64,000 nucleotides of DNA from Zygnema circumcarinatum SAG 698-1b. Its lineage: Eukaryota > Plantae > Zygnematophyceae. Below, piece by piece: positions 10,299 through 52,414 of the stretch (positions are counted from its first letter, which is position 1; the number at the start of each line of letters is the position of its first letter). Position numbers and translations under genes: made by a program. The notes below the pieces were generated by a model. That model did not search any database and was not told the DNA's origin. It worked only from the letters and a program-made list of their open reading frames with translations. Location: assembly GCA_037447605.1 (NCBI GenBank), contig CM074811.1, positions 62,001 to 126,000 on the forward strand, in the 5' to 3' direction.

Positions 10299-10915
10299 CC
10301 TACTCTCGCCGCTGCCCGGGGGGCCTGCGATCCGCGGGGAGCCCAGCCCCCGGGATCTCCCGAGCAGCCCCAGCCCCAGCCTCAGGGAGCTGAAGGAGGG
10401 TACCTAGCGCCCGGCCTCTCTCCAGGCAGGCAGATAGGCAGGTAGGCAGGCAGGCAGACAGGGAGGCCTCCGTCCAGAAGCGGGCGGAGCGAGCGGCGAA
10501 GAACGACCGCTTCGGGCGCGGCGACGAGCGGGGCGGAGGCGTGGCAGCAGCGGCAGTAGGAGCAGGTCCGCAGGAGCAGAAGGAGGGCTCCGCGGCCGCG
10601 TCCGCCGGCGAGGCGAGGCGAGGCGGGCCCGCTAGGGCCGCTACGGACCGGGACTCACGGGGGCCGTACGGTGCGCCGCCGGCCAGCTCAGCTCGCCGGA
10701 GGGAGGGAGGGAGGGGGCGAGGTGGCGCAGGTCGGGCCATCGGCTGGATCAGCCATTGGCGTGGCAAAGTGGCTGCCAGGGATGCTGCTTCCAAACATTA
10801 CTTGTCGACACTCGTGGCCAGCCTTTGCCAATGAGCTAAACCACTGACTACCTGTTAGGGATGGCCCGCGTTATAAAGTCCGATTACATTATATACTTTA
10901 CAACGGGTTTAAAAG

Positions 10916-11374
10916 GGATAAAACTTTCATTGAACTCGCGATGGCGAGGCCATCAAATGTACATGGACAAAGGCAAAATGTGGAACCACGAAGGACTGGT
11001 CACAAAGGACCGAAACACAATAAAACGAAGCTAGGAGCGGAAAACTACGCCTAGGCACAACAACGCAGCCCTAGAAGCAGCCGCGAAGGTCACCGATGTG
11101 AGGCACGTCGCGAGGAGGGAGCGGCGGAAGTCCACCGACACGATCACCAACAATCGCAGCACGCCGAAGAAGCGTAGAAGCGAGGCAACGCTGAAGGGCG
11201 ACGGAAATACGCTGTCGATAAAAGGTAGCCAAGATCGCCGGAGGAGGGCTTCCGGGGCCGTGCATCTCGAAGGAACGATGGGCGCACTGGCGAAGGAAGG
11301 TATCCAAACGGGTGTCGAGGCAGCCAAAAATCTCAATAGCCATAGGAACAAACTCGTCGGCTGCATCCCGGTGA
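10916..11374 (-). mobile_element. 5'-truncated RLE-endonuclease non-LTR retroposon (CRE/NeSL-like) inserted in the hAT MITE
   Basis: Encodes DEFVPMAIEIFGCL...FYRQRISVALQRCLA, a restriction-like endonuclease C-terminal signature. Flanked by a 9-bp TSD GTTTAAAAG (10907-10915 and 11375-11383). The uninterrupted MITE sequence is visible at 23080-23170. Confidence 0.75.
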
Positions 11375-11676
11375 GTTTAAAAGTAGTAATATAGTACAAA
11401 GTAAAACACTTTATTACATATATTATACCCACTCGTTTTGAACAATTAACGACCGTACGACCGTACGAGTACGGTCGTACCATACCAAAATTAGGTCGTT
11501 TTGGCGTTGGCGTTGCGAAATGCGTAGTCGTAATTAGGGATGGCTTAATTACGACTATATAATCTATATTATATTATATAACTGTGACGACTAAATAACG
11601 GCTGTTATATAATATTTTACAACGCCTTTACAACATGTACGGTCGTACGGTCGCACGACTGTACGGTATTATGCGG

Positions 11677-14600
11677 TGAAGACAGTGAACCAGACGGATG
11701 TAGCGTAGTGGAGCTGCGCTCGACGGATCCGCGTCAGTTCAGTCGTACTTGACATATGCCTCTTCAGTGTCACGGACCGGCATAATCCAGGAGCTGCCGA
11801 CGGAGAATGCGAGAAGGCGNNNNNNNNNNAGCATTATTCTATCCTGCTTGGCTCAGATTGGCTCATTGCAATGGGGGCACAGATCGACTTTTCTACGTGT
11901 CAGCTGCACTTATCTGCTGGCGGGACAGATTGCTCCTTCCCCATCATCCTCGAGTCCCTTGCCACCTCCGCCTTCCCCAAACGACACGCCACGGCGCAGG
12001 TCTCCTACCCAGAGATCAACATGTACCATGCGGTCGGCAGTACCCCATTCTTCCTATGGATCTGCCAATTTTGATACCGCAGGACGAGACTCCCTCCTCA
12101 AGCCCTCCGTGTCCAAATTTCCCCTCTCAAGGTGCCTAATTTGAAGAACTTTTTGCCACGGGTGATAAAGGCCGCATCCAACTTTCCCCTTACCTAGACC
12201 ATCGCTGATGAAAGAGTGGCCGAAGATGAGGGACATGCGATCAGCCGCCAGCATTTCGCACTCCACCGGCATTCGCACTATGGCCAGTGCCGGCAACCAA
12301 GAATCACCTAGTTTTTGCCCTCCCGCCATGCACCTCGCCACACGGAAGACCCACTGACAGCATCACATCGATATCGAGATTCCCCCCCCGCTGATGAATT
12401 TTCTCATGACCCTTATCGCTTCCACGCCCTTCAACAGTCGGCTGTCAAAGCATTTATCATGAGAATGTGGTCACGGACATGGAACCCGTGAGAAGGACCT
12501 TGGGCCAGCCCGGCCGTTTTGCCACCAAAGCCGGATGGCACACTTCGCTTCTGTGGAGACTATCGGAAACTGAACGCAGTGACGAAGTGGGATCCCTATA
12601 CATTGCCGGATGTGGACCTTATCCTCCACGGCGTCTCCCCTGATGACCAGTGGTTCTCAGCACTGGATATGTAGAAGTCCTTCCTCGCGCATCCTCGCGA
12701 TGTGCCGACGGCCGCAAGACGTGGCTTCGCGACGCCACACGCCTGCGGTAGTGGACAAAGGCTTCCCTTGGGCTCAAGAATTTGCAGCCACACCGGCCAA
12801 CTGTGCTCCGTCCGCCGCTTCTCTCGCGAAACCGTATGTGGATGATGCTTCCTCCACAAAGAAGGGATCGTCCCTCCCACCCTCAACACCATATCACTGG
12901 CACGGGAATACCATCAACAAGGCGCTGCTTGGAAGATTGCCCCCCAAAGAAATGCAGGCAAGTGGGGCCATCAAGAGATCACTCACCTGGGGACATCGCC
13001 TTGGCATCAATGGACCGGCCATCACCGGACAAAATGGGAGGCCATCGACCTCATGCCGCCCACGTAACCTCACTCACCAAATCTTCTTGGGACTCACCTC
13101 ATTCCCTATCTTCTGCTCATCAAGGGCTATGCCCTTTATCAAGGCTGCCCCTTACATGCCTTGGAGAAACACGGAGTTCATTACTTAATGGAAATGCAGC
13201 GCAGACTGGCCCTTCCATGCCTGGGCAGTGCCTCCCCTTCGTGCCCCTTGCTCAGACTGGCTCCGACCCCACCCCCTCGCCACAATCACTGACCGAGTCG
13301 ACTTCCTGCTTTGGGGCAAAGGGCTGGCCAAGTACTCCTCCCATGGGGAAACACCCGCCGCTATGCTAGTGGTCTGTTTCGAAATTGAGACTGCCATGCC
13401 TTACCTGGGCTTAGGCAAATGGGCTATTCTCTCAAGTAATTCTAGGAAGTTTGGGTTTTACGTACTCTTACCAGCCTATCATTATTCGGATCACTACACG
13501 CCACTCACTTGGCCGCGACATCATGGCTACCCTACCACCCAAGTTTGCACGCTAGTGATGAAGTTGAGGAGTATACCGTACTCAAGGTCACCACCCCTGA
13601 CGGAGCCACCGCTAATGCATTTGGCCCTCACCGAACTGGCCGGCTCCACTCCTCCACACGACCGGCCGCCTCGAACTCCATCCCCCACCTTACCCTTCTT
13701 GAACTCCCCGGAGCATTCCCATCGAGATTTTATTACAGCCTCAAGACCTCGCATGATGTCATATTCGCAGATGGGCTGATTGATATTCCGGCCACGGCCA
13801 CCACCCTCCATCGCTGGCAAGACCCTGACTTCACCCACGGCCACCCTCATGCGGATCCTTGGGAACTCCTCATGGATGACGACGGCGAAGCTCCCTTTCT
13901 TCCTCCCCACTTCCCTAGTGCCAATGATCGCCCACTCGACTCCTCTTCGCTGCTACGCCATGACTGGCCACACGCCCCTTTATCACCGACACCGCAGGGC
14001 CCCTGGCCAGCTCTCGCCGAACTCTCTCTCCTCTGATGATGATGGTCGATTCTCTACCTCCCTCCCCCTGCTCTCCCCCAACGAAATGGCATGAGATCCC
14101 GGATGTCGCCCACGATGCCCACCGCCGGATTCCACCTGGGCTTAAGAAGATGGTCGCCATGTTGCAGAGGCCACATCGCCCAGACTCATGGCGCAGTTGA
14201 GCCGATACGCCAAACCTCGCACTGCTGCTAATCAAACGCTGGGTAAGCGCCTCAGCCCCCGGCCAACCCCAGAGATGGGTGAGATCCTCGGCTACGGTGG
14301 GCGCTGCGTAAGATTGGAAATATCGACATTCTTTTTCTATCCCCACCCCTCCTCGCTACATTCGGTATATTCCTAGCAAAGGGACGTGCATACACCAAAT
14401 GGGTGGAAGTTCACGGATGTAATTCGCCATTCCGCTTCACTCGCTGCCTCCGACGGGCTATCATTCACCGGCCACTTCTCCCCTACTCGCTCACTCCATA
14501 ATGGTAATCAATACAAGGCGGCGCTTTAAGCAAGCCTACATATGCAAAGACTTCCTCACATCATTCATCGTAGCATCTCTACCCCTTGGCGTAATGGGCT

Positions 14601-16506
14601 TGCGTAACGTACTCTCATACGTGACCGGCCAAGGACGCTGCGGTGTTCAAGCGGGTCGCGAGCCTGAAAGGCGGATCGGCGCGCAGGTCATCCCCTCCTA
14701 CGGTTCCACTGCAACACTGCGCACCTCCACCGCTCTTCCCTTCTCGCCAGCCTCTATGGCCGTGAAGTCTCCGCGATTCCTCGCCACTCTCCTCCTCTCA
14801 CAGCCCCTCTTCTACTTTACGCGACGCGCCTCCCCGTGATCGGTAGCTCCAGCCTTCAGCCCCGCCCTCCTCGGCCTCCAAACCCTAGATTCCATGGCCT
14901 CCCACCACCTCGATCACAAGACAGACGCATAACTCACCGGACTTTGGGAGGGCGCCGACGCTGGCCGCTTCCTCCCCGCCCCAAAGTCGCGCCACGCCGC
15001 CTCATTTGGCTCGAATTCGCCAAACCGACTAACGTGGCTTTTCCTGGGTTAAATTCTTCATTTGTGTCGGCCGCTTCTGGAGATCCTGTACCGGCCATCA
15101 TTTCTAAGGCCCTCACTTCCCAGCGGAAACGCCCGCAAGGCCGGGCGCTCACACCGGATCGACATTCGTACGCCACGCCGCCGTTCCTCCCCCGGCGAAG
15201 TCGCATCGCTGGCGCAATCGGATGCCGCTGCCTCCTCCTCCCACCGCCACGCACTAATTCTCATCGTCCATTTCTAATTCCCCCGCCCACTTTTGCCACT
15301 TCGCCAACATTTCTCGGCCACCGCCGCCTCCGGCGGTCATGCCACCCCTCCCCATTGCCGCACGTACACGGAAGCCCACATGGCCACCGATTCCGCCATC
15401 AAGGCCTCCTCGCCCCTCGCTAATATCAAGCTTCTCCCCTTCCTTCTTTCTCCTTTCATCATACCAAGTAGGGCGCCAAGGCTTGTTTCGCAGACAAGAA
15501 GCATGTATGGCGCGAGGGAGCGCGCTGGACGGATCTGCTGCTGCCGGGGCTGTACTTGATATATGCTCTTTTCAGCTGGCTACGGACCGTATAATCTGTG
15601 AGCTCGCCGAATGAGAATGGTAAGGCGGCGCTATGCGCTGGCGCCTACTTTACGCGATACTCAATATCCGCCAAGGGGCGCACTCGAAGCGCTGCATAAT
15701 GCCGCCATTGTCATTTGTTGACCTATCGGCGTTCCACGTAGCTGGGCCAAAGTTTCTTCAGCCAAGGCCAGTTAATCGTAGATTGCCACCGCGAGACTCC
15801 GGGATCTACTATCGCTGGCGCTAGATGGGAATGTATGCTAGTTTCTTGTCTTTTAGTGCCGGGCTTAGCATTTGTATTTGCCGGTGGTGGTTTGTTGTCT
15901 TGTTCTTTTTTGTCAGCTTCTTCACCGTAAAAGAACAGACATGCTAAGGTAAGAGAGAGAGAAAGAGAGTTCCATCGCATGTAGAGAAAGAGAGAAAGAG
16001 TCTTCTTGTCATAGCATTTGGGACATCCCATTCACCCAAATTAGACAAAGATTTCAAAGTGAGAAGACACTTTCTTGGGAGCCGACGCATCCCCACTAAT
16101 CACGGGTCGGGTGAGTTTCCAAAACACAACCTTTATCTAAGTTGAGTCCTATTTGCCCTTTGTTGTCACTATGTCAAGCTACCATCTTGTGAAATCCTGC
16201 CTTATGCTCCGCCCAATGACCAATGATAACTAGAAGCCTAGCTAAGAGAATAGCCGGGGAGAGGACAGGGGAAGAGAGCCCCCAAGGAAGGGCTCTTTGC
16301 GCATCAAGTCCAGCCGCCAGTGGGAACATCTTCAGGATCCCTACGTCTTCCGCTGCGCGTACCTCTGAATCCCCCGGATCCTGGCTCTATGCTGCAGGCA
16401 GACCCACAGCACCAACCCAACCCTTCATCAGTTTCAGCACGGACGCGCGAGTGGCCGTACAGCACTTGCAACTAGCTCAGCAGTCTCCCCTTAACCCCAC
16501 TTATCT
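11677..16506 (+). mobile_element. Ty3/Gypsy family G1, indel-rich copy (LTR, gap, PR-RT-IN, LTR)
   Basis: 11677-11819 matches the LTR at ~22330. 11831-15500 is collinear with 19510-22330, with some near-identical blocks between indel-dense blocks. LTR ~15500-16506. Confidence 0.75.
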
Positions 16507-16518
16507 TGGTATCAGAGC

Positions 16519-18996
16519 TGAAGGTTTGGCAGATCCACGTACCTTGATACGTGAGGCTGCCGATCCTGTGACCCGTGTCACAGCCGCCATGGATGAAGAG
16601 CTGCAACAAGAGGGACAAGCAGATCTTCATGAGTTTTCAGATGAAGACTTGGGACTTCAAGAAGATCAGACGATCGGAAATCCAAGGACGGATTCAGACT
16701 CAGAGGAAGAAGCAGTCAGAGAAAGACTAAAGATGGGCATCACAGAAGAGAACCCTTATCCTAGTTTGGCTTACCTTGAGCAGATCGAGTCGATTGAAGA
16801 ACTGCAGCGACTCCATCTAGGCAGTGATGGCCATAGGTTTCGCTGGCGATATGCACGCAGGATGATCAAGTTGGCAGCTTGCCCAGTTGCTGTCATGGCC
16901 GCAGATGCCGTGAAGAGAGGAGTTCCGTTCGAACCTGAGATCCCCCCTGCGGCCCACCAGAGACAGAACCCACGGGATCTCAGTCGGATAACTACTGCAC
17001 CAGGAGTCCCTTCCAGCACAGCAGCGACACGCAGTCCCACAGCAGAACAGGGGATTCCTCAGAAGACACCCTCACCTCCGGCGTTCGCAACTTACCCATC
17101 CAGCAGCCCCAGGCGACCGGCTTCAAGGACAAGGGCGGGACGATCGCAAGGACCCTCCAGCTTTCGCACCAACCTGCAGAGAAGCACACGTTTCAGATCT
17201 GAGGTTCCCAGCAAGATGGAAGAGATGATGACAAAACTGATAGCCATGATTCCTGAAAAGAGTGAGGTGAGAGATACCACGGGCATCATCACTAGAGGAT
17301 TCACCGGAAAGCAGGAAGATGCAGAAGCCTGGCTGAGACATCTTGAGGAGAAGGCTGCGCAAGCAGACCTGAAAGAGGACCAGTGGGTCAAGCTGGCCCT
17401 TGGAGCGCTGGAAGGAGAGGCAGTCAATTGGAAGCTGTCCCGAAACTGGCACAAAGCGGATGTCGTCGGCACCCTGACAAGGGACACATTCAAGCAAGCT
17501 TTCAGACAACGCTGGATTTCAGATCCAATCACTGTGCTAGACCGACTTCGCTACATAGAGTGCTATAGTGATGAGCGGCTGTTTGAATTCACTGAGCGTT
17601 TTGTGCGCATGGCAAATACGATCGAGAACTTACCTGACTTTCCAGAGGTTCTCCAGTGGTTCCGCAAGGCCATCAGCGAGAAAGATCTTCACCTGGATCG
17701 TGAGCTGCTCGACAACCCACCAGTAGATGCCCAGGCTTTGTTAGAAAGGGTAGAGCAAATTCAGAAAGATCAAGAGAGAGGCAACCGACATGTCCGTCCA
17801 CACTACATGAATGCTACTGATCCACGTCAGGATCGACTATATCAGCAATTCCTGAAGACCCAGAATCAGCAGCTGTATGATCCTTACGCAGCAGCTTCCA
17901 GGAACAAGCCGTCTTTCTCTGGCATCCTTGCTCAGGACGTCCGGGCAGCCCCTGTGGTGCAGCCTCTGGCTATAGCCAGCACGACCAAGCTCCTTCCCCC
18001 TTCTCCATACCCTCATGATCCTGCGCATCCCATTGAGCCTTTGGTGAATCCTCACATACCCGATGTTCCTCGTCCAGGATATCGGGGTCCTTATTCCGAT
18101 CGCACACCCGAAGAGAGAGAAGCTGCCAGAGCCGATTTGCGCCGTCGGATGACAAAGGCAGGGGTTCCAGAGGGCGTTGTCTAGCCTGCGACACGAATCA
18201 TAACCCGAGGCTGCGCTGTGGACCATGGACCTGCACCTTCTGCCAGATCACGGGACATGATGCCCGTGTATGCATGCGGAGACTCTCCAGTGAGAAAGCT
18301 CGAAAGGGGAAGGATGCAGCTGCAAGGAGCTCTCCTGCAGAGATCACTTTCATGGACATGCTCCCGGCTACTCGCACACCATCGAGAAATCCTCCCCCCT
18401 TTCGCCCTCATCCACCTCCTTCACCCTCTTATACCATCCTGCAACGTCCGCCGATCCATCTGCATCCTATGGAGTCCCCTTCCTTGACAAACGCCTTAGG
18501 GGCCGAGTCCGATCTGGCTGCCCGCGCACGCACTGCGCCGATTGCCGCAGCATTGCAACCGGCTTGGTCTGAATCCCCCATCGATTTTGAGGAGGGCGCT
18601 CACGCCCGTATCGCACAGATTGCAGCGGCCTTGCGCAGGCTCCCTGTGAATCAGAGTGATCCTCATTCGCATCCCCTGCCATTCCTCCCTGCCAATGTCA
18701 ACGGCGCCAGCTCCTCTGGCACTGCTCCACCGGTTACCCCCCCTGTCAGGCGAACTTCCGTCCTCCCTCCTTCCACGGGTCATCCCTTGGGATCCATGCC
18801 TGAGGAGGAAACTGACGATCTCACTGAGGAGGAGCCGACAGCGGCACAGCCGGAGCCGACAGCGCTAGTGACGGAAGAAATGCACGTGAACCCTCCCCAT
18901 CGCCCTCGGGCAGCCCGTTTCTACCCCCAAGCAGCCGATCGTCGACCACCTCCCCCGACAGATGGCGTATCCCTGATTGAACGCATGGTTCATTAG
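16519..18996 (+). pseudogene. gag: G1 gag (capsid plus CCHC knuckle), frameshifted
   Basis: Retrotransposon gag core (FTGKQEDAEAWLRHLEE...W...F). After a 1-nt shift at ~18175 the other frame reads CTFCQITGHDARVC (CX2CX4HX4C). In-frame TAG at 18994-18996. Confidence 0.8.
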
Positions 18997-18999
18997 CTC

Positions 19000-21900
19000 A
19001 TGGGGGACAAGGCTAAGATCGGAATTACCTTGTCACAGTTGATGCAGCTGGTTCCAGGTGCTGCAGCCGTCGTTCGTAAGCTGGCCGACAGCGCAGAGGC
19101 CACCCTGCGGCCTCCCACGGTTCCCATGGCACCTCCTCCGGACATCCCCTCGCCGGCAGATATACACCACATGGCCACGGCGCCTCTTCCAGACCCAGTT
19201 CGCTCTCCCCGCCAGCCTCCTCGCCAGATTCATGTCCTCCCTCTGATCCCAACACCCAACGTGCGAATCATCGTCAATGTATGGCTGAACGGCCATCCCA
19301 GCAAGGCCATGATCGACACAGGAGCTATGCGCACAGTTCTGTCCAAACCAGTGATGAAGGCTACAGGGGTTAAGTTGGACAAGACGCTCGAACCCATCCC
19401 CAGATATGTGGGGGTTGAGGGGAGTCTACATGAAGGTTTGGGCAGTGCCCAAGTGATCATCAGCCTTGGAGAGATGGGAGCCACGGTGAATGCGGTCATC
19501 ACAGCCGCTGAGCATTATTCTATCCTGCTTGGCTCAGATTGGCTCATTGCAATGGGGGCACAGATCGACTTTTCTACGTGTCAGCTGCACTTATCTGCTG
19601 GCGGGACAGATTGCTCCTTCCCCATCATCCTCGAGTCCCTTGCCACCTCCGCCTTCCCCAAACGACACGCCACGGCGCAGGTCTCCTACCCTGAGATCAA
19701 CATGTACCATGCGGTCGGCAGTCCCCATTCTTCCTATGGATCTGCCAATTCTGATACCGAGGACGAGACTCCCCCTCCTGCTCCTCCGGGTCCAGCCCTC
19801 TGTGTGCTCATGAGACTCTTTGGCTGCGGCCACAGCTGCATCTGTTCCCGATCAGCACCATCAGTGAGGAAAGAAGGAAGTCACATAGGGACAGATACGG
19901 ATTGGGGCCAGGCAGCTATTCTCAGGTCCAATCAAGCATTCGCAATTGCGACAAGTGCTGCGCCGCAATCACCTAGTTTTTGCCCGCCATGCACTCGACA
20001 TCGGAAAGACCCACCTGATTGAGCATCACATCGATACGGGAGATTCCCCCCCAGTGATGACCATGACCCCTTATCGCTTTTCCGCTGCTCAACAGGCCGA
20101 TGTCGAAAGACAGATCGATGAGAATGTGGCTGCCGGATTGATGGAACCCGGAGAAGGACCTTGGGCCAGCCCGGCCGTTTTGCCACCAAAGCCGGATGGC
20201 ACACTTCGCTTCTGTGGAGACTATCGGAAACTGAACGCAGTGACGAAGTGGGATCCCTATACATTGCCGGATGTGGACCTTATCCTCCACGGCGTCTCCC
20301 CTGATGACCAGTGGTTCTCAGCACTGGATATGCAGAAGTCCTTCTGGCAGATCCCTTTGCGACAGGCCGATCGCTGCAAGACAGGGCTTCGCACGGCCAC
20401 ACGCTTCGTGCAGTGGACAGTGCTTCCCTTTGGGCTCAAGAATTCCAGCCAAACTCACCAGCGCCTGGCCAACCAGGTCTTCGGTCCCTGTCGCGCCTTC
20501 TGCGAACCGTATGTGGATGATGCTTCCCTCCACAGCAAGGATTGGTCCTCCCACCTGCAACACATTGACCAAGTACTGCAACAGCTCATCAGTGCGCGTT
20601 TGAAGATTGCCCCCAAGAAATGCAAGTGGGGCCATCAGGAGATCACTCACCTAGGACATCGTCTTGGCATCAATGGACTGAAGCCATCACTCGACAAAAT
20701 TGAGGCCATTGACCTCATGCCAGTTCCACAGAACCTCACTCAGCTCAAATCTTTCTTGGGACTCACCTCNNNNNNNNNNTCTTCTGCGTTACGTCATGAC
20801 TCACACACTGCCCCCTTTTATCACTGACACCGAGAGGGCTCGGCTGCTCCGCCGCGCTCGGAACTTCTCTGTTGATGATGATGGTCAGATTCTCTACCTC
20901 CCCTCCGGCCTTCCTGTTCCTTTCCCCAACGAGCGCATGGAGATCCTGGATGTCGCCCACGATGCCCAGCCGGCCGGATTCCACCTTGGCCAGAAGAAGA
21001 TGGTCGCCATGTTGCAGGAGCGCTATTACTGGCCCAGACTCCATGGCGCAGTGAGCCGATACGTCGAAACCTGCACCCGTTGCCAACGCGGCAAGCGCTC
21101 TGCTCCCCCCGACCGCCAACCCCTAGAGATGGGTGAGATCCCGATACGAGGCGTTGCAGAAGATTGGAACATTGACACCTTTTCTATCCCCCAGCTCGGC
21201 ACCCCCTCTGGCTACATTCGGGTATTCCTAGCAGTGGACAGATACACCAAATGGGTGGAAGTTCACGTGACAGAATCTAAGCATTCCGTTCACTCTGCTC
21301 GTCTCCTGACGGCCATCATTCACCGTCACTCTCTCCCCTACTCTGTTCACTCTGACAATGGCACCGAATACAAGGCGGCGTTTGCCAAGCTCATGCAAGA
21401 CTTCCGCATCATTCACCGCACCTCTAGCCCCTACTCCCCTTGGCAGAATGGGCTTGCAGAACGTACCATACAGACCGTCAAGGACGCGTGTGTTCGCGGC
21501 TGCGCGGAGCTGGAGGCGGACTGGCGCGAGGTCATCCCCTCCATGGTCTTCACTTGCAACACTTCGGTGCACTCCTCCACTGGCTTCTCTCCCTTCGAGC
21601 TCCTCTATGGCCGTAAGCCCCGCATTCCCCTTGACCTCCTCTCTGCTGAGCCCCTCTTCTACGATGACGCGCCTCCCCCAGATCGGGTAGCCCAGCTTCA
21701 GCTCCTGGCCCTCCGCTTCCAAACCCTAAATTCCATGGCCTCCCACCACCTCGAACGCGCGCACAGACGACAACTCACTGACTTTGGGAGGCGCCGACGC
21801 GCTGCTCTCCCGCCCAATCAGGTCGTGCCACGTCAGCTCATTTTGGCTCAGGAATCTCGCCAAACCGACTCAACGGGCTTTTCCCTGGTTGGGCCCTTCC
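19000..21900 (+). pseudogene. pol: G1 pol: aspartic protease, RT, (RNase H in gap), integrase
   Basis: MIDTGA protease, RT with PFGLKN and YVDD, integrase HHCC (H..H..CTRC) and D,D(35)E (IDTF, SDNGTEY, NGLAER). The PR-RT-IN order is Ty3/Gypsy. Confidence 0.9.
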
Positions 21901-23445: not shown

Positions 23446-23700
23446 TAGGGATGGATTAGTTACGATTATATATTATATATTATATTATACAACTGTGACG
23501 AATAGATAACGGCTGATATATATTAATTTACAACGCCTTTACAACATGTACGGTCGTACGGTCGTAAGACTGTACGGTATTATGCGGCCCGAGCACGAGC
23601 AGACAGAGAAAACCAGCGAACGCATTTCGCAACGCCAACGCCAAAACGACCTAATTTTGGTATGGTACGACCGTACGATCGTACAGTACGGTACCGTCCG
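23446..23700 (+). mobile_element. Third hAT MITE copy (5' half), interrupted by copia sequence
   Basis: Starts TAGGGATGGATTAGTTACGA and is collinear with 11535-11676, then with the internal region seen at 22980. Its other end was not found. Confidence 0.75.
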
Positions 23701-42200: not shown

Positions 42201-44149
42201 TACTGATGTTATTTTGGGGAGTGCTTGGTTAACCATGGTCAAAGCACAAATGGACTTTTCTGTCCCACATTGCATTCTGCACAGTGGTGACAGGCGGCTT
42301 ACCCTGCACCCTGGCAGAGCCACATCCGCTGCTATCAAGCAGCCTGCTACTCCTTATCTCTGCTCAGCTATGCAATTGGCCAAAGCAGTTAAGGAAGGTT
42401 GCACCTTGTTCATGGTGCATGTCATGGCAGCCACTGAGGATGTCCATGACGAAGATCAGGAATGGCAGATCACATCTACGGTTGTGCTCTCGGCCGTTCC
42501 ACCCAAGATCCAACCTTTGTTGGATGAATTCAGGGATGTTTTCCCTGACGACCTTCCAAGAGGGTTGCCACCATCTAGAGGAGTGGGGCACACAATCCCT
42601 CTTGAGCCTGAGCAAAAGCCGCCTTGGCGGCCGATCTATCGGTTAAGCCCAAAAGAAACCGAGGAGATGCGAAAGCAGTTGGCAACTTTACGTGAAAAGG
42701 GCTGGATAGAACCCAGTCAGAGCCCCTTTGGGGCGCCCATCTTGTTTGTTGGGAAGAAAGATGGTTCGTTGAGGATGTGCATTGATTATCGCGCACTCAA
42801 CAAGATCACCGTAAAGAACCGTTTTGCTTTACCACGTATTGATGATCTGTTGGATCGTCTTCACGGCGCCAGAGTGTTTACTTCACTCGATCTTGCTCAG
42901 GGGTACCATCAGATCCGCGTCACGGAAGCTGATGTGCCAAAAACTGCGTTCCGGACGCCGATTGGTCACTTCCAATATAAGGTGTTGCCCTTTGGATTGA
43001 CTAATGCTCCGGCGACTTTCCAGGCTGTGATGAACGAAATGTTCATCGGCATGGACGAGTTTGTTTTGGTTTACCTCGATGATATCCTTGTCTTCAGTAA
43101 GACAGAGGAGGAACATCTTGAACACGTTCGGAAAGTGTTTGAGACCCTGAGGAAGCACCAATTTTATGCCAAGAGGAAGAAGTGTCACTTCATGCAACGT
43201 GAGTTGCTTTATCTTGGGCATATCCTCAATGATCAGGGTCTTCGACCTGATCCTGCCAAAGTTTCCGCGGTAGAAACTTGGGCGCCACCGACTGACCTGC
43301 ACCAGTTGAGGTCTTTTCTGGGCTTTGCGAATTATTTTCGTAAGTTCATCCAAGGGTTTAGTAAATTGGTTACTCCCTTGACTAATTTGACACGTTCCGG
43401 TGTCCCCTTTACATGGACCCCTGAATGCCAGGATGCATTCGAAGGTGTGCGCCATGCACTTGTTACCGCACCCACTCTCCGTTTAGCGGACCCGTCCAAG
43501 CCTTATGAAGTGGTTTGTGATGCTTCGGGATTCGCCTTGGGTGCCGTCTTGTTTCAAGATGGCCAACCTTTGGCGTATGAAAGTCGCAAAATGAATCCCG
43601 CTGAGCGNNNNNNNNNNAGGAGGATCACGGACTAACGGCACCACGGGACCAATCCGGTCTCGCGATTGGATCTCGGGCCGCGGCCCGGATCCCCCTTTTG
43701 GACTTCTCCGTTCGTCCGTACAATAACGGTTACCCGTTGGTACGGACGGACTGTCAGTCGGACCCCGCGCCGCGCGCGTAGGATCCGACCGTGCACCGAC
43801 GTACGGCGGCGCGTCGCGTCGCGGCGCGCGCCGCGGAATGCGGCGAGCATTCGTACGTTGTACTCCTCTGACCCATTCGAGTCAGAGAGGGACACGTGGC
43901 AGTCTGCCATTGGACAGCCCTGCTTCCAATCCTCCATGCTGGTAGGAGGTTCAACGGGGGAAGTGTAAAGGGGCGAGGGTGACTGTCGTCACCCAACCAA
44001 CATACCGGCATTCGGTTGCACCCCTGCCCAGGGCTGCGCCGCCCTCTGAAGCTCTCTCTTGCTCTCTCTCTCCCGCTGAACTCTGAGTGCTGGTGTGTGA
44101 TTCCGCGTAGGCTGAAGGAGTTAGATTTCAGCCGTTACATCCACACTCT
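39250..44149 (+). mobile_element. Ty3/Gypsy family G2 copy 2
   Basis: Noisy 5' LTR ending ~39909 with a degraded PBS. gag knuckle CFRCRKEGHKARDC, RT ORF 42214-43608 (LPFGLTNAP, YLDD, VVCDASG), N gap, and a 3' LTR ending CCGTTACA at ~44149. Confidence 0.85.
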
Positions 44150-45519
44150 TTTGTCGTGTAGCTCTAGCCGCAATGTATATAAAACAGATTAGGACATTGT
44201 ACTTTTCACCACGTTAATCACACATCTGTCTTTTTGTGTCAACTCTCTCTGTCCTCACTTTGATCGTACAATGTCCACTCCGTCTTTTTCAATACTTCCT
44301 CCTCAACACCCTCCTTCCTCCTCCTCCTTCCTCAACACCCTCTCCTTTTTCTTCCTTCGCCCTTCCACCATTCTCCCTTTCACCACACTCCATGTTCCTT
44401 CCTCCTCCTTCCTCTTTCCTCCTCCTCCTCCACCAATCATTATTTGTCGGTCATTTCGGTTTCTCTGGTAGGAAGAAATGCAGCAGTAGCTGCAGCAGCA
44501 GAACGGCAGAGAAACCGCAGCGACATAAGTGTTGGTTACGGTAGATTTCGGAACAAAACGGCAGCAAGCACCACCAGCAACTCTTCAGCTAGACAGGCGA
44601 GTGTAAGAAAATGGAAGTCGGGAGGACGTGAAGAATAGGGGAAGATGATATTGCGGTTGTTCCGTAAACGTTTCGTCATCNNNNNNNNNNTGGCTCTTGC
44701 TAGCCCGTGGCGGTTCGCCACGTGGCCGGATCACCGTCATGTGTCAGCGCTAGAGGTATCTAGCGGGTTCACCGCGTTCGGCGGGTGGACTAGCCGTGTC
44801 GCGCCCGCGCGACGCGCGCGTGCGACACCGGCGACGTCGTTCATGCGACACGCGCATACGACGCGCAGATGCGACGCGCGGCCGACCGGTTGGCCTGTTG
44901 ACTTTCGTAACTTTCCTTTTCCGTCAATTTTTGTTCGCGCCCGCGCGACGAACGAAGCGGCGGAAAAGCGTCAGTGGAGTCGTCTCCGAATGTCGGCTAC
45001 GAACTGCGGTGCTATGTGGACCACCATGCGTGGGTCCGCGACCTGAACGGAACGGCTGTACGGACGGCAGCCGGAAAATGGCGAAAGAGACCTGACGGTC
45101 AAAGAATCTACAACGGGAGGGCAATCGGTAGGTCAACCGTCGCCGTCACCGTACTGGCACGAAACGGCTGTATTTGGACAATCGTTGTGGACGAGGATGT
45201 GGGTCCTTTTTTGTACGATTTTCGTAATCGCAGGATTGTGATTGTCGGTTGACAATGCTTGAAACGGGATGTTTGTACCGGTATGTGTTGGTAAACCGTA
45301 ACAGCTTGTGTTGTCAAACTATGGACACGCAAGATTTGGAATGGTTCGGTTGACAACGCCCGAAACGGTCATCGTGTTGGTCAAATTAAAAACCGCTCTA
45401 ACGTACCGTGTCGTGTTTGACAGATACGTAACAGCTCTATTTGTAGTTTGACAAACGGTAGCCGTTGCCGAATCCATTGTTACGACAGCCTTATTTGATG
45501 TGACTTAANNNNNNNNNNC

Positions 45520-47310
45520 GACAGCGTTCGTTTTGAATGTTTTACGGGACTTATTGTTGTAAATAGGGTATGTGTCGCAGCGTGTTTAAAGTGGCCACGT
45601 GGTGCATTCTAATTGGTTAAATCGCACCTCGCGCAACTGAACAGAACACAATATTAAACAGCTTATGTGTTCGATCAGTTGCCGTTTCAGTTCACTTCAC
45701 ATAATTAAGGTTCGAAGACATTTCTATAAAAAGGCAACGCACGAGGATCTTGATTCGCAGCCTGTTGTTTTTAAATCCGACCCTCCAATTTCGGCTAATA
45801 GGGGGAGTCAGACCTTGACCATCGCAATTGCAAGATTTCGACCGCGGAAAGGTATTGATTTCGATTTCCGAATTCGGGTCGGAAACCACGGCTCCCCCCG
45901 AACCTGTCTGTCACGTCCGTACGGCGGAATAGGTTACAAAAGTGCCCCCAAATTTCAGAATTCCGCGCTCCGAAACGGGGGGCCTCGTTTCGAAATTTCC
46001 AGCTTTCCGCCGATCAGGAATCGTGCCCCGCCTTGTCGCCATGCGCGTCACGCACGAGCGAGCGCCTCACCGCCGCCGCCCGGACGCCGCGACTCGCCGC
46101 CGCGCAGAGCAGCGTTTCAGGGCTGGCACAGCTTTGGGGTTTCTCTTTCCCCCACCAACAACACCCACCTTGCGGCAAGCACGTCCTCACGGACCTCATA
46201 AGCACCACGGGAGAGTGGTCAGCGAGGACGCGAAGTGACGACGGCGGAGTTGATCAGCGGTGAGTCCTTGCCCTTGCACCTGCCCCTGCCTCCCTCGCCC
46301 TGGCCCATGCCTTCCTTGTCTCCCTTACTGCTCTTTCTGCTGCTGCTGCTGCTGGTTTTTTTTTTGCTGCTTCTTTTTCTGCTGCTGTTGCTATTGCTGT
46401 GCNNNNNNNNNNCGTTTTCTATGTACGACAGCGTTCGTTTTGAATGTTTTACGGGACTTATTGTTGTAAATAGGGTATGTGTCGCAGCGTGTTTAAAGTG
46501 GCCACGTGGTGCATTCTAATTGGTTAAATCGCACCTCGCGCAACTGAACAGAACACAATATTAAACAGCTTATGTGTTCGATCAGTTGCCGTTTCAGTTC
46601 ACTTCACATAATTAAGGTTCGAAGACATTTCTATAAAAAGGCAACGCACGAGGATCTTGATTCGCAGCCTGTTGTTTTTAAATCCGACCCTCCAATTTCG
46701 GCTAATAGGGGGAGTCAGACCTTGACCATCGCAATTGCAAGATTTCGACCGCGGAAAGGTATTGATTTCGATTTCCGAATTCGGGTCGGAAACCACGGCT
46801 CCCCCCGAACCTGTCTGTCACGTCCGTACGGCGGAATAGGTTACAAAAGTGCCCCCAAATTTCAGAATTCCGCGCTCCGAAACGGGGGGCCTCGTTTCGA
46901 AATTTCCAGCTTTCCGCCGATCAGGAATCGTGCCCCGCCTTGTCGCCATGCGCGTCACGCACGAGCGAGCGCCTCACCGCCGCCGCCCGGACGCCGCGAC
47001 TCGCCGCCGCGCAGAGCAGCGTTTCAGGGCTGGCACAGCTTTGGGGTTTCTCTTTCCCCCACCAACAACACCCACCTTGCGGCAAGCACGTCCTCACGGA
47101 CCTCATAAGCACCACGGGAGAGTGGTCAGCGAGGACGCGAAGTGACGACGGCGGAGTTGATCAGCGGTGAGTCCTTGCCCTTGCACCTGCCCCTGCCTCC
47201 CTCGCCCTGGCCCATGCCTTCCTTGTCTCCCTTACTGCTCTTTCTGCTGCTGCTGCTGCTGGTTTTTTTTTTTGCTGCTTCTTTTTCTGCTGCTGTTGCT
47301 ATTGCTGTGC
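45520..47310 (+). repeat. Two essentially identical ~880-bp units, 907 bp apart, separated by an N gap
   Basis: 45520-46402 and 46427-47310 translate identically apart from a poly-T length difference. Probably an unmerged contig overlap. Confidence 0.8.
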
Positions 47311-47327
47311 NNNNNNNNNNCTATTAA

Positions 47328-47398
47328 GTTGAAGTGGCGAATTGGTTACGCAACTGTTGCAAAACAGTAATAAAGGGGTTCAAATCCCCTCTTCAACT
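47328..47398 (+). tRNA. tRNA-Cys(GCA)-like unit, non-canonical anticodon loop (copy 1)
   Basis: Acceptor GTTGAAG/CTTCAAC plus T73, D-arm GCG-AATTGGTTA-CGC, anticodon arm ACTGT-TGCAAA-ACAGT, T-arm AGGGG-TTCAAAT-CCCCT, and a T-run downstream. Confidence 0.6.
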
Positions 47399-47767
47399 TG
47401 TAGTGTTTATTCACTTTTCTATTTTTATTTATTTAAACTTTTTGTGTTTTTGCTTCATATGCCAAATATTTGTTGTTATTTTTTTTTAGTTGTTTTTATT
47501 CTATCTATCTATTCTTTATTCTATATTTTATCCTATCTGCTGCGGCTGTTGCTCTTGCTGCTGTTGCAGCATTCATTTTTTTTGTTTTTGATGCTGCATT
47601 TTGCAATACGCATTTTGCCTCCCTTGCACCTGCCCCAGCCTCCTTTGCCTTTGCCCCTTGTTGTGTTGCCCTTGCCTTTGTCTTCCTTGCCTTTGCTTGT
47701 GCCCCTCATTCCTTTGCTTATGCTACTGTTGTGTGTATGATTGTATGTCATTCCTCCCTCTCCCCAA

Positions 47768-47846
47768 GTCAAAGTGGCGAATTGGTTACGCAACCGTTGT
47801 AAAACATTGCAACAGTAATAAAGGGGTTCAAATCCCCACTTCAACT
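47768..47846 (+). tRNA. tRNA-like unit copy 2, with an insertion in the anticodon arm
   Basis: Same D-arm and near-identical T-arm, 440 bp downstream of copy 1; acceptor stem imperfect. Confidence 0.5.
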
Positions 47847-48685
47847 TGTAGTGTTTTAATATTCTTCTATTTTTATTTATTTAAAGTTTTTGTGTTTTTG
47901 CTTTATATGCCAAACATTTGTTGGTATTTTTTTTAGTTGTTTTTATTGCTTTTTACCATCTCCTTCAAAACTTTGAATTGGGTTGTTGTTGTAGCACAAT
48001 TTAGAACATTGAATACGCTTCTCCCATGAATGTACAAATGAAACACAAAGTAATGGCTTGTGTGAAATCTCAAGTGAAGATGCAACGACAAAGACTGGAG
48101 TGGGAGAAACAACAATGAGAGTTTACTGAGGCAAGGCGAATCCTAGATGAAGAAGAAGAACAAAAATTACAAATATAAGATTCTCAAGAAGAACAAAGAT
48201 TACACATTATTGGAGCAGCGTAAAAAATCTATTAATGTTAAAACATGATATTATTTGCATTTAGAATCGCTTAAAGTAGAATACAGGAGAACTCAAAAAA
48301 GTGTGTGCACAAAGAGAGGGAGGGAAGGAGGCCAGGGGGGGGGTGTCTTAGTGACGCCAGTACTTACTAAATTGAGAATGAATGGCACAAGTTTTTATAT
48401 TGAGACATGGTTTTTATTTTGTATACAAAAAGTATTTTTATATATGTTTGTGTGTATGTATATATGTGTATGAATTATTTGCGTGAATGTGTTTTTATAA
48501 GAACAAAGAAAGAGTAGTAGTTGTGTATGCTACAAGGAAGATTCAGAAACATTTGTACAATCTCATCAATTGAAACAAATAAAGGTAAAAAGCAAAAAAG
48601 ACAACAAAAAAATAACAACAAATATTTGACATATGAAGCAAAAACACAAAAACTATAAATGAATAAAAATAGAATAAACACTACA

Positions 48686-48756
48686 AGTCGAAGAGGGAAT
48701 TTGAACCCTTTTATTACTGTTTTGCAATAGTTGCGTAACCAATCCACCACTTTGAC
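48686..48756 (-). tRNA. tRNA-like unit copy 4
   Basis: Reverse-strand homolog: GTCAAAG...CTTCGAC-T, with several transitions. Confidence 0.5.
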
Positions 48757-49071
48757 TTAATTGGAAGGGGAGGAATAACATACACTCATACACAACACAA
48801 GCATAGGCAAGACTGAGGCAAGGGAGGCAGAATGCGGAATGCGGAATGCGGAATGCCGAATAGGGAATGTGGAATGCAGAATGTAGCAGCAAAAAAAAAA
48901 GCATGCTGCAACAGCAATAGCAGCAGCAAAAGCAGATAGAATAATATATAGAATAAAGAATGGATAGATAGAATAAAAACAACTAGAAAAAATAACAACA
49001 TAGGTTTGGTATATGAAGCAAAAACACAAAAACTTTAAATAAATAAAATAGAAGAATGAATAAACACTACA

Positions 49072-49142
49072 AGTCAAAGAGGGGATTTGAACCCCTTTAT
49101 TACTGTTTTGCAACAGTTGCGTAACCAATCCGCCACTTTGAC
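49072..49142 (-). tRNA. tRNA-like unit copy 3
   Basis: Acceptor GTCAAAG/CTTTGAC fully paired, with the same anticodon and T-arms as copy 1. Confidence 0.6.
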
Positions 49143-49299
49143 TTAATGGGGAGGGGGAGGAATAACACACACTCATATACGTAGCAATGGCATAAGCGAA
49201 GGAACGGGAGGCACAAGCAAAAGGAAGGGAAGGCAGAGGCAAGGGCAACACAGCAAGGGGCAAAGGCAAAGGAGGCTAGGGCATGGGCAAGGGAGGCAA

Positions 49300-50340
49300 A
49301 ATGCGGAATGCGGAATGCGGAATGCGAAATGAGGAATGCAGAATGCAGAATACCAAATGCAACATCCAAAAAATAATAAAAATTGCTGCAGCAGTAACAA
49401 CATAAAAGCAAAAGCAGAAAAAGCAACACCAAAAAAAGCAGCAGCAGCAGCATCAACAATAGCAGCAGCAACAACAGCAGCAACAGCAGCAGCAGTAGAA
49501 AAAGAAGCAATAGCAGCAGCAGCAGCAGCAAGAGTAACAACAAATAGCAATAGCAACAGAAAAAGAAGCAGCAGCAGGAGCAGCAACAGGAGCAGCAAAA
49601 GGAGCAGCAACGGGAACAACAGTAGCAACAACAGCAACACCAGCAGCAGCAACAGCAGCAACAGCATCAACAGCAGCAGCAACAGCAACAACAGCAGCAG
49701 CAACAGCAACAACAGCAGTAACAGCAGCGATAGCAACAACAGCAGCAACAGTAGCAGCAGGAGCTGTAGCAGTAGTAGCAAGATAAGAAGCGACTAGAGC
49801 TGCAGCAGTAGCAGCAGAAACAGCAGCAACAGCAGTAGCAGCGGCAGCAGCACAACAACAACAGCAAAAACAGCAGATGAAGAAGAAGAGGCAGCAGCAG
49901 CAGCAAAAAAACCAAGAGCAAAAAAAGCAACAGCAACATCAACTGCAGCAGCAGGAGATGTAGCAGCAGAAACAGTATCAACAGCAGTAGCAGCGGCAGC
50001 AGCACAACAACAACAGCAGAAACAGCAGATGAAGAGGAAGAAGAGGCAGCAGCAGCAGCAAAAAAAGCAAGAGCAAAAAAAGCACCAGCATAAGAAGCAG
50101 GAGCAACATCAACAACAACAGCATAAAAAGCAGCAACAGCAGCAGTAGCAAAAAGAGCACCAAGGGAGACAAAGGATGCATGAGCAAAGGCGAGGGAGGC
50201 AGGGGCAGGTGCAAGAGCACAGGAGGCAGGGGCAAGGGAAAGGGAGGCAGGGGGAAGGGCAGGGAAGGCAGGTGCAGAGGCAAGGGCAAGGGAGGCAGGT
50301 GCAAGGGCACGGGAGGCAGGCAAGGGGCAAGGGCAAGGAC
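49300..50340. repeat. Low-complexity (GCA/ACA)n and GGCAAG-type microsatellite tract
   Basis: Directly visible. It produces spurious poly-Leu, poly-Ser/Asn and poly-Ala ORFs. Confidence 0.9.
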
Positions 50341-50823
50341 TCACCGCTGCTCAAGTCCGCCGTCGTCCCCATAAACCGATCGCGCTCTTGCCGTGGTCGA
50401 CGGCACACCGCTCACCGTTCACTGGGGTGAGGCGAGAGGACGCTCTGCTCGTTCCGCTGCAAGGATAGCTCGGCCATGGCGAGGGAGGAGCCCTAAACCT
50501 TAAACCCGAGCTGATATGAGCTCGCAGCGAGCGAGCAGGCGGGCAGGCGGCGGGCGCGAGGCGCCGCGGCGGGACGCCGCTCGCGCGGTGGTGACGCGCG
50601 TAGCGACAAAACGGAGGGCGGCGGGCGGCAGGCGGCGGAGGGAGCGCGGGGGGGGCGAAAAGGGGGGAGTCAAACCTGGCCCGGAGATACGGAGGCAAAA
50701 TAATTGCTCTCTGGAATTCGTGACGCCCGAGCCTGTCGAACGTCCACTTTTCGCGGAATTGGGCTGCCGTACAACGCGGAATTAGGGCCGGGGACTTTCT
50801 GAATTGATTTGGCGCTGGTCTAA

Positions 50824-51228
50824 GGGTGGGGGTCCATCAGCGTTTGCCTGTACCGCCACATCGGATCATGAGTCATGAAGGGAGAATTGCGGGTTCCATC
50901 AGAGGTCCCTCGAGCCAATCAGCGGACGCCACGTGGACACATTTATTCGTCCACCGTGGCCGCGCGTCCACCGCGCATTGGCGGCTGTGCGCCAGCGTGG
51001 TCGCCGTACCCCCGTGGCATCTCGAACGGATCTTCAACGCCACGCGGCGGCGCACGATTGGAAAACTCAGGCATAGTTCTAGGGAATTTTTTTCAGGGGG
51101 TATGTTTTGGGGAACTACGCCTGTACCTCCACGTCGGTCCTAGTCGGCGCCACGACGGCGCCACATCATCCTCCAAAACAACGCCTGTACCTCCACGTCG
51201 GCGAAAAATCGCTGATGGACCCCCACCC
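50824..51228. mobile_element. 405-bp MITE with perfect 19-bp TIRs
   Basis: GGGTGGGGGTCCATCAGCG (50824-50842) and its exact reverse complement (51210-51228). It interrupts sequence whose homolog is intact at ~45800-45830. No clear TSD, so the superfamily is unassigned. Confidence 0.75.
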
Positions 51229-51446
51229 AGTCTGACTCCCCCTATTCTGCCCCCCTCCCCCATTTTGGATATTTCGGGAGGAGATCGCCCCCCTGTTTTG
51301 AATATTTCTTTCCCGCCCCTCCCGTCCTCTCCCCTCCCCCCCCTGCCCTCCCCCTCCCCTCCCCCTCCCCTTCCCTTCCCTGCCCTTTCCGCCCTCTCCC
51401 CTCCCCTCCCCTCCCCTGCCCNNNNNNNNNNGCAATCTCCACACAA

Positions 51447-51630
51447 ATGACTGAGTATAAGACTCGCGATGAGCTTGTACAAGTCTTGACCAAGCACACT
51501 ATAAGAAGGAAGGATTTCACATCAAGATCGGCAAGCATAGCGATAGCCGCCGACTCTACCTGCAATGCTTTAGCGGGGGGACCTACGAGGACAGAGGTCT
51601 GGAAGAGAGTAGTAAGAAGAGGAATATCTC
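51447..51630 (+). pseudogene. Possible Mutator-like transposase N-terminal (FAR1/WRKY-like) fragment
   Basis: With one frameshift it reads MTEYKTRDELVQVLTKHTI-KEGFHIKIGKHSDSRRLYLQCFSGGTYEDRGLEESSKKR, resembling the MULE N-terminal pattern. Recognised by eye only. Confidence 0.4.
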
Positions 51631-52414
51631 TCCTCTGCTCTCTCTCCTCTAGTCTTTCTCTCCTCTACTCTCTCACCTCTGCTCATTCTCTCTCTCTCCT
51701 GTGCTCTCTCCTGTGCTCTCTACTCTAGTCTCTCTCTCCTTTGCTCTCACTCTGCTCACTCTCTTTCTCTCCTTTGCTCTCTCTCTCTCGAACGTTGCGC
51801 TGATGTGTGAGAAGGAGAAAACGCGGGGGGGGGGGAATATCCAGAATGGGGGGGGCGGGATATTTCAAAATAGGGGGCAGAATAGCCGAAATGGGAGGGT
51901 CGGATTTCAAAAAAACAGTGGCGCGATAACCAAAAAGGGGGGGGGTATATAGTTCTCCTATATATTATATAGTCGTAATTAAGCCATCCCTACTACCTGT
52001 ACAGGGCAAATATTGGCTAGCCAACAATTGGCACACAATGGTTGCCGATGGTCGTCGATCCTCTCCCACTGTACAGTCCCGCACGCATTTGCAACCGCGG
52101 GCTTGCTCGTGTACTTGTATGTGTCAATGAAAACGAGCAGCGTACAATAGTAGTAGTAGTAGTCGCGGTGTCATCAATCACTTCGGAAATTTCTCACTAA
52201 TTCCCCCTGACCATACGTATCTATTTCTGAAAACACTCAGCAGACATGATTATCAACAAAAGCATCCGAGCAAGACGTAGTTACTACATAAAGTATTCCT
52301 AGCCAGAGGGGGGTTATTCACTAAAATTATAATAAACCAGACCAAGCTACTAATCAAAATAATTCCAACCAGGCACACTTGGAAACTAATAAAGCTATAT
52401 TCAAAAGAAATTTG

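Follow-up and report, generated by a model that had tools for sequence, protein, structure and literature searches.

The question at this locus is whether a 41-kb block of transposons could lie inside one small hAT insertion, as an initial annotation had proposed. The sequence is from Zygnema circumcarinatum SAG 698-1b, a streptophyte alga, and comprises positions 62,001–126,000 of the forward strand of CM074811.1 (GCA_037447605.1), a stretch of 64,000 nt referred to here as the window. The insertion site falls in a spacer of 1.7 kb, flanked on one side by the 5′ end of a CLC chloride-channel gene and on the other by the 3′ end of an F-box/LRR (MAX2-like) gene, whose protein found no relatives in our search. 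The annotation had rightly put the site upstream of the CLC-f ATG; by our measurement the distance to that ATG (at 10298) is 550 bp, as against ~560 bp claimed. The features of the island are as follows, with window coordinates, strand where one applies and the method used.

10848–10855: left copy of the target-site duplication, CTACCTGT (sequence read, window-wide 8-mer search, flank comparison)
10856–10915, plus: MITE1 end A, family positions 1–60, terminal repeat TAGGGATGGC (terminus search, family alignment)
10916–11374: non-coding 459-bp insertion in MITE1, with the perfect 9-bp duplication GTTTAAAAG at 10907–10915 and 11375–11383 (repeat comparison)
11375–11525, plus: MITE1 continued to family position 202, where family similarity ends (family alignment)
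11526–11534: nine orphan bases, of which 11527–11534 (GTCGTAAT) are the left target duplication of MITE2 (family alignment)
11535–11698, minus (reverse orientation): B-side part of MITE2, from end B as far as about family position 203 (family alignment)
11699–22969, plus: Gypsy complex within MITE2 (domain search, LTR comparison)
22980–23173, minus (reverse orientation): A-side part of MITE2, family position about 197 to 1, terminal repeat with one mismatch (family alignment)
23174–23181: right target duplication of MITE2, GTCATAAT, 7/8, the difference being CG to CA (flank comparison)
23182–23445: unclassified 264 bp, no relative in the window (repeat comparison)
23446–23698, minus (reverse orientation): MITE3, from end B as far as about family position 128, end A absent (family alignment)
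23699–25452, minus: 438 bp of unclassified sequence, followed after a gap by a Copia reverse-transcriptase fragment (24147–25217, minus) (domain search)
25463–38600, plus: Gypsy element GA in two parts (25463–26954 and 33774 to about 38600), with GB cleanly between them (repeat comparison)
26955–33773, minus: Gypsy chromovirus GB (integrase, SH3_Tf2-1 and chromodomain, reverse transcriptase), nested in GA (domain search)
39400–44139, plus: Gypsy element GC (reverse transcriptase and RNase H at 42214–43605), followed beyond a gap at 43608 by LTR-like sequence that is collinear with GA (domain search, repeat comparison)
44691–47310: three short contigs, unclassified repeats (repeat comparison)
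47321–49351: cluster of tRNA-derived repeat units, two of which score as tRNA (tRNA scoring)
49352–51958: low-complexity tract rich in CAG/CAA; unclassified stretch with GGGGGAGT-type ends (50663–51242); gap at 51422 (repeat comparison)
51959–51992, plus: MITE1 end B, of which only the final 34 bp are present (family positions 343–376), 33/34 identical to MITE2 end B (family alignment)
51993–52000: right copy of the target-site duplication, CTACCTGT (sequence read, window-wide 8-mer search, flank comparison)

The two outermost features carry the answer. CTACCTGT was found only twice on either strand of the window; its left copy (10848) adjoins the terminus TAGGGATGGC at 10856, and its right copy (51993) adjoins an inverted copy of that terminus ending at 51992. 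Our re-reading of the letters at 10848–10865 and 51983–52000 agrees with the first description of them, and the matching termini and perfect 8-bp duplication are borne out. The two copies are direct rather than inverted, and target duplications must be direct repeats. Exact matches to TAGGGATGGC occur in the window at 10856 (+), 11535 (+), 51983 (−) and 56687 (+), and copies with one mismatch at 23164 (−), 23446 (+) and 56230 (−). When the outer 8-bp flanks were compared for every correctly ordered plus/minus pair of termini in the window, the 10856/51992 pair matched at 8/8 bases and the 11535/23173 pair at 7/8, with all remaining pairs at 0–2/8. The perfect direct repeat, together with the termini and their end types, shows that a single insertion event produced the ends at 10856 and 51992, and whatever truly lies between them is therefore inside that element.

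The ends belong to a family with a 376-bp composite unit, AT-rich (39% G+C) and non-coding, with ACGACCGTACG-type subterminal repeats ~125 bp from each end. The annotation had given its length as ~0.5 kb and placed further copies elsewhere in the window; of the three copies in the window, MITE2 and MITE3 both lie within the island. End A occurs at 10856 (+) and 23173 (−), and end B at 11535 (+), 23446 (+) and 51992 (−). The copy at 23446–23698 runs unbroken from end B into sequence common to the A-side copies and so links ends A and B, confirming that both subterminal sequences come from one family, as its two unlike ends.

hAT elements have short terminal inverted repeats that start YARNG. 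Here the terminal repeat is 10 bp long at both ends and agrees with the Ac/Ds terminus quoted in PMC3260210 at each of its first 8 bases; termini C/TAGGGATGAAA and an 8-bp duplication are documented there. Duplications of 8 bp flank MITE1 (8/8), MITE2 (7/8, a CpG transition) and an 85-bp relative at 56687–56771 (6/8). This combination fits the earlier hAT assignment and points to a non-autonomous, Ds1-like hAT MITE. No open reading frame scanned in the window contained a hAT transposase domain. The target preference of hAT elements is nTnnnnAn; flanks of TAGGGATGG-type ends in the window have T at position 2 in 4/4 cases and A at position 7 in 1/4. A literature search with the terminal 9-mer returned only unrelated telomere and primer matches, and neither the left flank nor MITE end A had an exact match in the metagenome contigs scanned.

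MITE1 itself is present as complementary, non-overlapping pieces, family positions 1–202 on the left and 343–376 on the right. The statement that both ends are intact holds for the terminal repeats and fails for the rest: the right end keeps 34 bp, and positions 203–342 (~140 bp) occur nowhere in the window. The pieces thus fail to rejoin once recognisable insertions are removed, which counts against a single nest. The 459-bp insertion in the left piece has relatives at about 56257–56669 (reverse) and 52421–52521 (partial); it has no terminal inverted repeats between 10916 and 11374 and is therefore probably a retroposon-type element.

MITE2 lies reversed between the ends of MITE1 and is split by the Gypsy complex, its halves meeting the complex at nearly one family position, across three gaps. 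The LTR starting at 11699 is 95% identical to that at 22339–22968, and between them are two related internal regions (11830–16154 and 16155–22338) with gag, protease, reverse transcriptase and integrase, and gaps at 11820 and 20770. The breaks in MITE1 and MITE2 fall within 0–5 bp of one family position, and the ten bases left of MITE2 (the orphan bases 11526–11534 together with 11525) repeat the natural subterminal sequence of end B; simple nesting predicts neither. Inversion and recombination models for the coincident 202/203 break were rejected, as none gives the observed order of pieces with both outer flanks in place. An arrangement with MITE2 inserted in MITE1's own end B at GTCGTAAT was likewise rejected: the sequence past the right duplication of MITE2 does not match the end-B terminus, and MITE1 end B is uninterrupted over its 34 bp. 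Just beyond MITE2, a hAT-like terminus, TAGGGGGTCC, begins at 23186 and is partnerless; the candidate partners at 25878 and 32635 are not credible, both being within Gypsy coding or LTR sequence.

Domain scans of the island interior found only transposon domains (RVT_1, RVT_2, rve, Integrase_H2C2, aspartyl protease, RNase H and Chromo) and repeats, and no host-gene domains. GB is nested precisely in GA, with a 4-bp overlap of target and a junction that is clean by comparison with the uninterrupted relative GC; its LTRs are identical over the first 76 bp and about 70% identical over the remainder. Target duplications of inner elements are thus legible for the 459-bp element (9/9), MITE2 (7/8) and GB. 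At the two broken edges of MITE1 (from 11526 and up to 51958) the elements are unclassified, without readable duplications or partners, a further point against a single nest. The one abutting MITE1 end B ends at 51958, and no second copy of its terminus was found; a suspected FAR1/MULE-type motif at 51500–51640 had no Pfam support. The MITE had been described as a sink for roughly ten later insertions. At least ten transposon pieces do lie inside it, but the MITE itself was struck by only two or three, and the remaining insertions nest in one another.

The island holds twelve ten-N gaps, twice the six listed earlier, plus scattered N at 26654–26728. Judged from related copies, the gaps at 11820, 20770 and 43608 hide ~3.9, ~0.84 and ~2.2 kb. 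Because at least three gaps hide 0.8–3.9 kb each, the reported 41 kb is a scaffold figure and a lower bound; the ends are >41 kb apart as drawn, and the span is about 48 kb or more when hidden sequence is counted. Contig order between 24147 and 51431 is taken solely from the scaffold.

Could the arrangement be fortuitous, or a product of assembly? That unrelated termini share an 8-bp flank by coincidence is scarcely credible. Apart from the post hoc character of the observation nothing speaks for it, whereas the chance of an 8/8 match is ~1 in 65,000 for a given pair (~1.5e-5), the figure the annotation had also reached, and only one or two end-type pairs are eligible. In addition, the two ends are of complementary type, the 11535/23173 pair nests between them in a well-formed way and the 8-mer is absent elsewhere in the window. 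A partial scaffolding artefact, with the ends and the left 13 kb real and some contigs between 24 and 51 kb misplaced or assembler-duplicated, so that content and size are misdrawn, is a more serious alternative that we nevertheless regard as unlikely. It would accommodate the many ten-N gaps and the kilobases concealed in three of them, the 0.8–1.3-kb contigs at 43618–47310, two of which (45519–46402 and 46426–47310) are 99.9% identical, and the joins 24136/24147, 25452/25463 and 44680/45519, which no sequence evidence supports. Against it, the testable joins (20770, 22970, 43608 and the N stretch 26654–26728) are collinear with related elements, and the outer duplication independently makes the first and last contigs neighbours. 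Both outer contigs, moreover, pass from MITE1 straight into foreign transposon sequence, so MITE1 is certainly interrupted.

The giant hAT-mobilisable composite raised in the annotation would have formed as a nest elsewhere, flanked by ends A and B from two different MITE copies, before a hAT transposase moved the block here and made the 8-bp duplication. An Ac/Ds macrotransposon with up to 100 kb of nested retrotransposons, as cited in PMC3260210, offers a precedent, and the 85-bp element, which shares these termini, hints that in this genome very short ends may be enough. For normal transposition, however, Ac requires about 200 bp at either end, and neither end here is a complete element: the left piece lacks its own end B in the right orientation, the right piece is 34 bp long, and the window contains no forward end B after the left piece or forward end A before the right. 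The two pieces instead complement each other within one 376-bp unit, as expected of a single element that was split. The CTACCTGT duplication is perfect though some inner LTR pairs are strongly diverged, but as it contains no CpG, little about age can be read from its preservation. Macrotransposition is also far rarer than nested insertion, and we rate the composite as quite improbable.

We consider it likely that one old hAT MITE insertion upstream of the CLC gene was later filled by nested transposons. A 376-bp non-autonomous Ds1-like hAT element would have inserted once, duplicating CTACCTGT, and other transposons would have landed in MITE1 and in each other until its ends were >41 kb apart. 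The fillers would include Gypsy elements (one a chromovirus), Copia, further MITEs, tRNA-derived repeats and unclassified elements, with MITE1 the oldest component. The ~140 bp missing from MITE1 may have been deleted, or may be hidden in an assembly gap. Nesting may have been favoured since insertions into silenced transposon DNA would be tolerated. Chromodomain integrases are known to target heterochromatin, and such targeting could have contributed in this island.

The CTACCTGT scar shows that only about 1.7 kb originally separated the CLC and MAX2-like genes and that all the intervening sequence is a later arrival. An island next to two genes can in this way be dated and read through its outer 8-bp scar, and the duplication independently confirms a large-scale join in a fragmented scaffold. 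Five interruptions fall in about 860 bp of family sequence in the window, and the coincident breaks at 202/203 are the basis for a further idea, that the family is a preferred transposon landing pad with a hotspot at a small palindrome there (GCGAA-ATGCG-TTCGC). We think this doubtful; if it holds, transposon islands beside genes in a compact algal genome would start from a small DNA transposon, and the island is a possible starting point for asking whether the family attracts insertions.

The closest known counterparts are maize Ds1 elements enlarged to 0.8–24 kb by LTR retrotransposons (Du et al. 2011, PMC3260210). Like them, the family here is a ~0.4-kb non-autonomous hAT with little beyond termini in common with autonomous elements, termini beginning TAGGGATG and an 8-bp target duplication, and its ends have been forced kilobases apart by LTR retrotransposons and other DNA transposons. 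It differs in its host, a streptophyte alga rather than a grass, in its larger span, in having no identified autonomous partner, and in that MITE1 cannot be fully rebuilt. Unlike in Ac, the terminal repeat diverges after base 8, and the subterminal repeats are ACGACCGTACG-like rather than AAACGG. Ac/Ds macrotransposons, as cited in PMC3260210 (its ref. 55), likewise have two hAT ends and one 8-bp duplication around tens of kilobases of nested retrotransposons, but with a whole element at each end. As in the maize intergenic nests of SanMiguel et al. 1996, again as cited in PMC3260210, LTR retrotransposons lie within one another between two genes and layers can be peeled at readable junctions, here GB in GA; the outermost shell, however, is formed by a DNA transposon, with MITEs and unclassified elements making up several of the layers. 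The reversed second family copy between the ends of the first recalls double Ds, in which one Ds lies reversed inside another, although the sequence past the right duplication of MITE2 is not MITE1, so insertion in MITE1 is not demonstrable, and there is no chromosome-breakage evidence. Split-element nesting is textbook for maize Ac/Ds, and the value of the present case therefore lies in annotation and assembly checking for an alga: a nest within a split hAT MITE is a clean but ordinary structure, the same as is known from maize Ds1.

The octamer CTACCTGT occurs in the window, on either strand, only at 10848-10855 and 51993-52000, in the direct orientation required of a target duplication. Each copy adjoins the terminus TAGGGATGGC, which stands forward at 10856 and, at the other side, as an inverted copy whose last base is 51992; both outer sites read as the initial annotation had given them. 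Comparing the 8-bp outer flanks across all correctly ordered pairs of TAGGGATGGC-type termini, we found an 8/8 match for 10856/51992, 7/8 for 11535/23173 and 0-2/8 for every other pair; any one pair would match 8/8 by chance about once in 65,000, and only one or two pairs were eligible. The unique 8/8 direct repeat and paired termini uphold the proposal of a single hAT insertion around the whole island, and the outer duplication is evidence, independent of the scaffold, that the first and last contigs are true neighbours.

Flanking genes and MITE-family copies; family positions are coordinates along the 376-bp composite
ATG at 10298, minus strand: CLC channel gene, with Voltage_CLC and CBS domains
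10856-10915 and 11375-11525: left piece of MITE1, the outer element, family positions 1-202
11535-11698, reverse: MITE2, B part
22980-23173, reverse: MITE2, A part
23446-23698: MITE3, a truncated third copy
51959-51992: right piece of MITE1, last 34 bp only
53112-55142, minus strand: F-box/LRR open reading frame
10856 forward, 23173 reverse: end A, by sequence inward of the terminal repeat
11535 forward, 23446 forward, 51992 reverse: end B, by the same sequence

All termini have a 10-bp repeat in common, beyond which there are two end types, A and B. The copy at 23446-23698 runs unbroken from end B into sequence common with A-side copies, so A and B are the two ends of a single unit. Two different ends of one MITE family had been proposed, and this holds, but the suggested size of ~0.5 kb does not: the composite built from the pieces is 376 bp long (39% G+C, versus ~55% for the window), without coding capacity and with ACGACCGTACG-type repeats ~125 bp inward of each end. 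The first 8 bases of the terminus are the same as those of maize Ac/Ds, C/TAGGGATGAAA, and an 8-bp duplication is a hallmark of Ac/Ds and hAT elements (PMC3260210). Scans of open reading frames within the window detected no hAT transposase domain, so the family is putatively assigned to hAT by its termini and duplication length only. An 85-bp micro-element (56687-56771) also has TAGGGATGGC-type termini, with flanks GTCGCATG and GTTGCACG matching at 6/8, and hints either that ends this short suffice for transposition or that the element lost much of its interior once inserted. Another hAT-like element has its right end at 56130-56239 (terminus TAGGAATGGCC in reverse); no partner terminus for it was found in the window.

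The outer ends, previously described as intact, are so for the terminal repeats only: the right piece of MITE1 is 34 bp, and positions 203-342 (140 bp) are absent from the window except in the two other copies. A 459-bp non-coding element, flanked by a perfect 9-bp duplication, interrupts the left piece. This element belongs to a non-coding family of ~0.45 kb (10916-11374; ~56257-56669, reverse; 52421-52521) that lacks terminal inverted repeats, differs at one end among copies and has target duplications of 9 bp (GTTTAAAAG) and 8 bp (CATGAGAG); it is probably retroposon or SINE-like.

After 9 orphan bases MITE2 begins in reverse orientation. Its flanks, GTCGTAAT and GTCATAAT, match at 7/8, the sole difference being a CG-to-CA change, and both halves adjoin a Gypsy complex (11699-22969) at nearly equal family positions; the gap at 22970 can account for the absent 16-19 bp of MITE2 and for the LTR tail. 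An LTR fragment at 11699-11819 shares 95% identity with the LTR at 22339-22458. MITE2 and its Gypsy complex are a second, independent, well-formed nested pair, and this pair confirms the scaffold between 10.8 and 24.1 kb. Between this LTR pair lie two related Gypsy internal regions in tandem (11830-16154 and 16155-22968), 97% identical over the first 286 bp of the left one and 75-82% thereafter. The element is recombinant or tandem, or else the contig is in part a chimera.

The island holds 12 ten-N gaps, rather than the six listed initially, plus scattered N at 26654-26728. Hidden lengths were estimated from related copies within the window, compared with both sides of each gap.

Estimated hidden sequence at gaps
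20770: ~0.84 kb; the RT-to-integrase interval lacks the RNase H region
43608: ~2.2 kb, by comparison with the Gypsy element GA
11820: ~3.9 kb, assuming a full-length element there
22970: ~35-40 bp; absent MITE2 bases and LTR tail

Because of this hidden sequence the letters are discontinuous across these gaps, and the island measures at least 41,137 bp, its true length probably reaching or exceeding 48 kb. The contigs run collinear with related copies, in order and orientation, at 20770, 22970 and 43608 and over the stretch of scattered N, and the gaps at 24137, 25453, 44681, 45509, 46403, 47311 and 51422 offered no sequence evidence for or against order. Contigs 45519-46402 and 46426-47310 (~0.9 kb, 99.9% identical, N between, each ending CTG-rich) could have been duplicated by the assembly or could form a genuine tandem repeat.

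Domain searches of the interior found transposon domains only and no host-gene domain. MITE3 is followed by a Copia RT fragment and then by GA. The Gypsy element GB, which bears a chromodomain, divides GA cleanly at a junction that is exact against GA's uninterrupted relative GC, which comes next; short contigs of unclassified repeats, a tRNA-derived cluster, a CAG-rich tract and unclassified elements follow. The two LTRs of GB (26955-27480 and 33271-33773) agree at every base of their first 76 bp but show only ~70% identity beyond, which suggests a recombinant element or local gene conversion. Two tRNA-like sequences (47327-47399 and 49071-49143; Rfam tRNA, 51-52 bits) have an 8-base anticodon loop (ARAGORN) and lie within repeat units of 385-440 bp, probably tRNA-derived SINEs. 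GGGGGAGT-type ends occur at 45801, 46708 and 50663-51242, the last a candidate 580-bp element with inverted termini whose compared flanks did not match. With the island removed, the CLC and F-box/LRR genes would lie ~1.7 kb apart. A protein search found no relatives of the MAX2-like neighbour, and exact scans of metagenome contigs with the left flank and MITE end A gave no match.

MITE1 and MITE2 break within 0-5 bp of a common family position, where the family has a small palindrome. To the left of MITE2, 10 bases match the natural subterminal sequence of end B, and because this flank copies the element's own sequence it yields a perfect 12-bp palindrome arm (TAGTCGTAATTA/TAATTACGACTA) about the MITE2 terminus (11524-11558). 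The coincidence has a chance of ~1% with multiple alignments allowed for; GTCRTAAT has three copies in the locus. Templated filler DNA occurs at Ds deletion junctions, and the end-B-like flank might be such filler at a repaired break. The simple models tried account for none of the shared break, this flank or the 140-bp loss in MITE1.

The initial observation is confirmed and its reading supported, with corrections: a single old insertion, filled later in place, is the best reading and a likely one. Chromodomain integrases direct insertion to heterochromatin; such targeting, with tolerated insertions into dead transposons, would be a plausible reason for the pile-up. Mis-scaffolding of part of the right 27 kb is improbable, and would alter content and size but leave the conclusion unaffected. 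That the whole nest moved as one hAT-bracketed block is more doubtful still: a maize macrotransposon has carried 100 kb of nested retrotransposons (PMC3260210), but here the two ends complement each other as parts of a single unit, and one of them is only 34 bp. Filling in place after a single insertion has been published for Ds elements of maize, Ds1 among them; ten maize Ds1 elements span 0.8-24 kb, six of them owing to LTR retrotransposons (PMC3260210).
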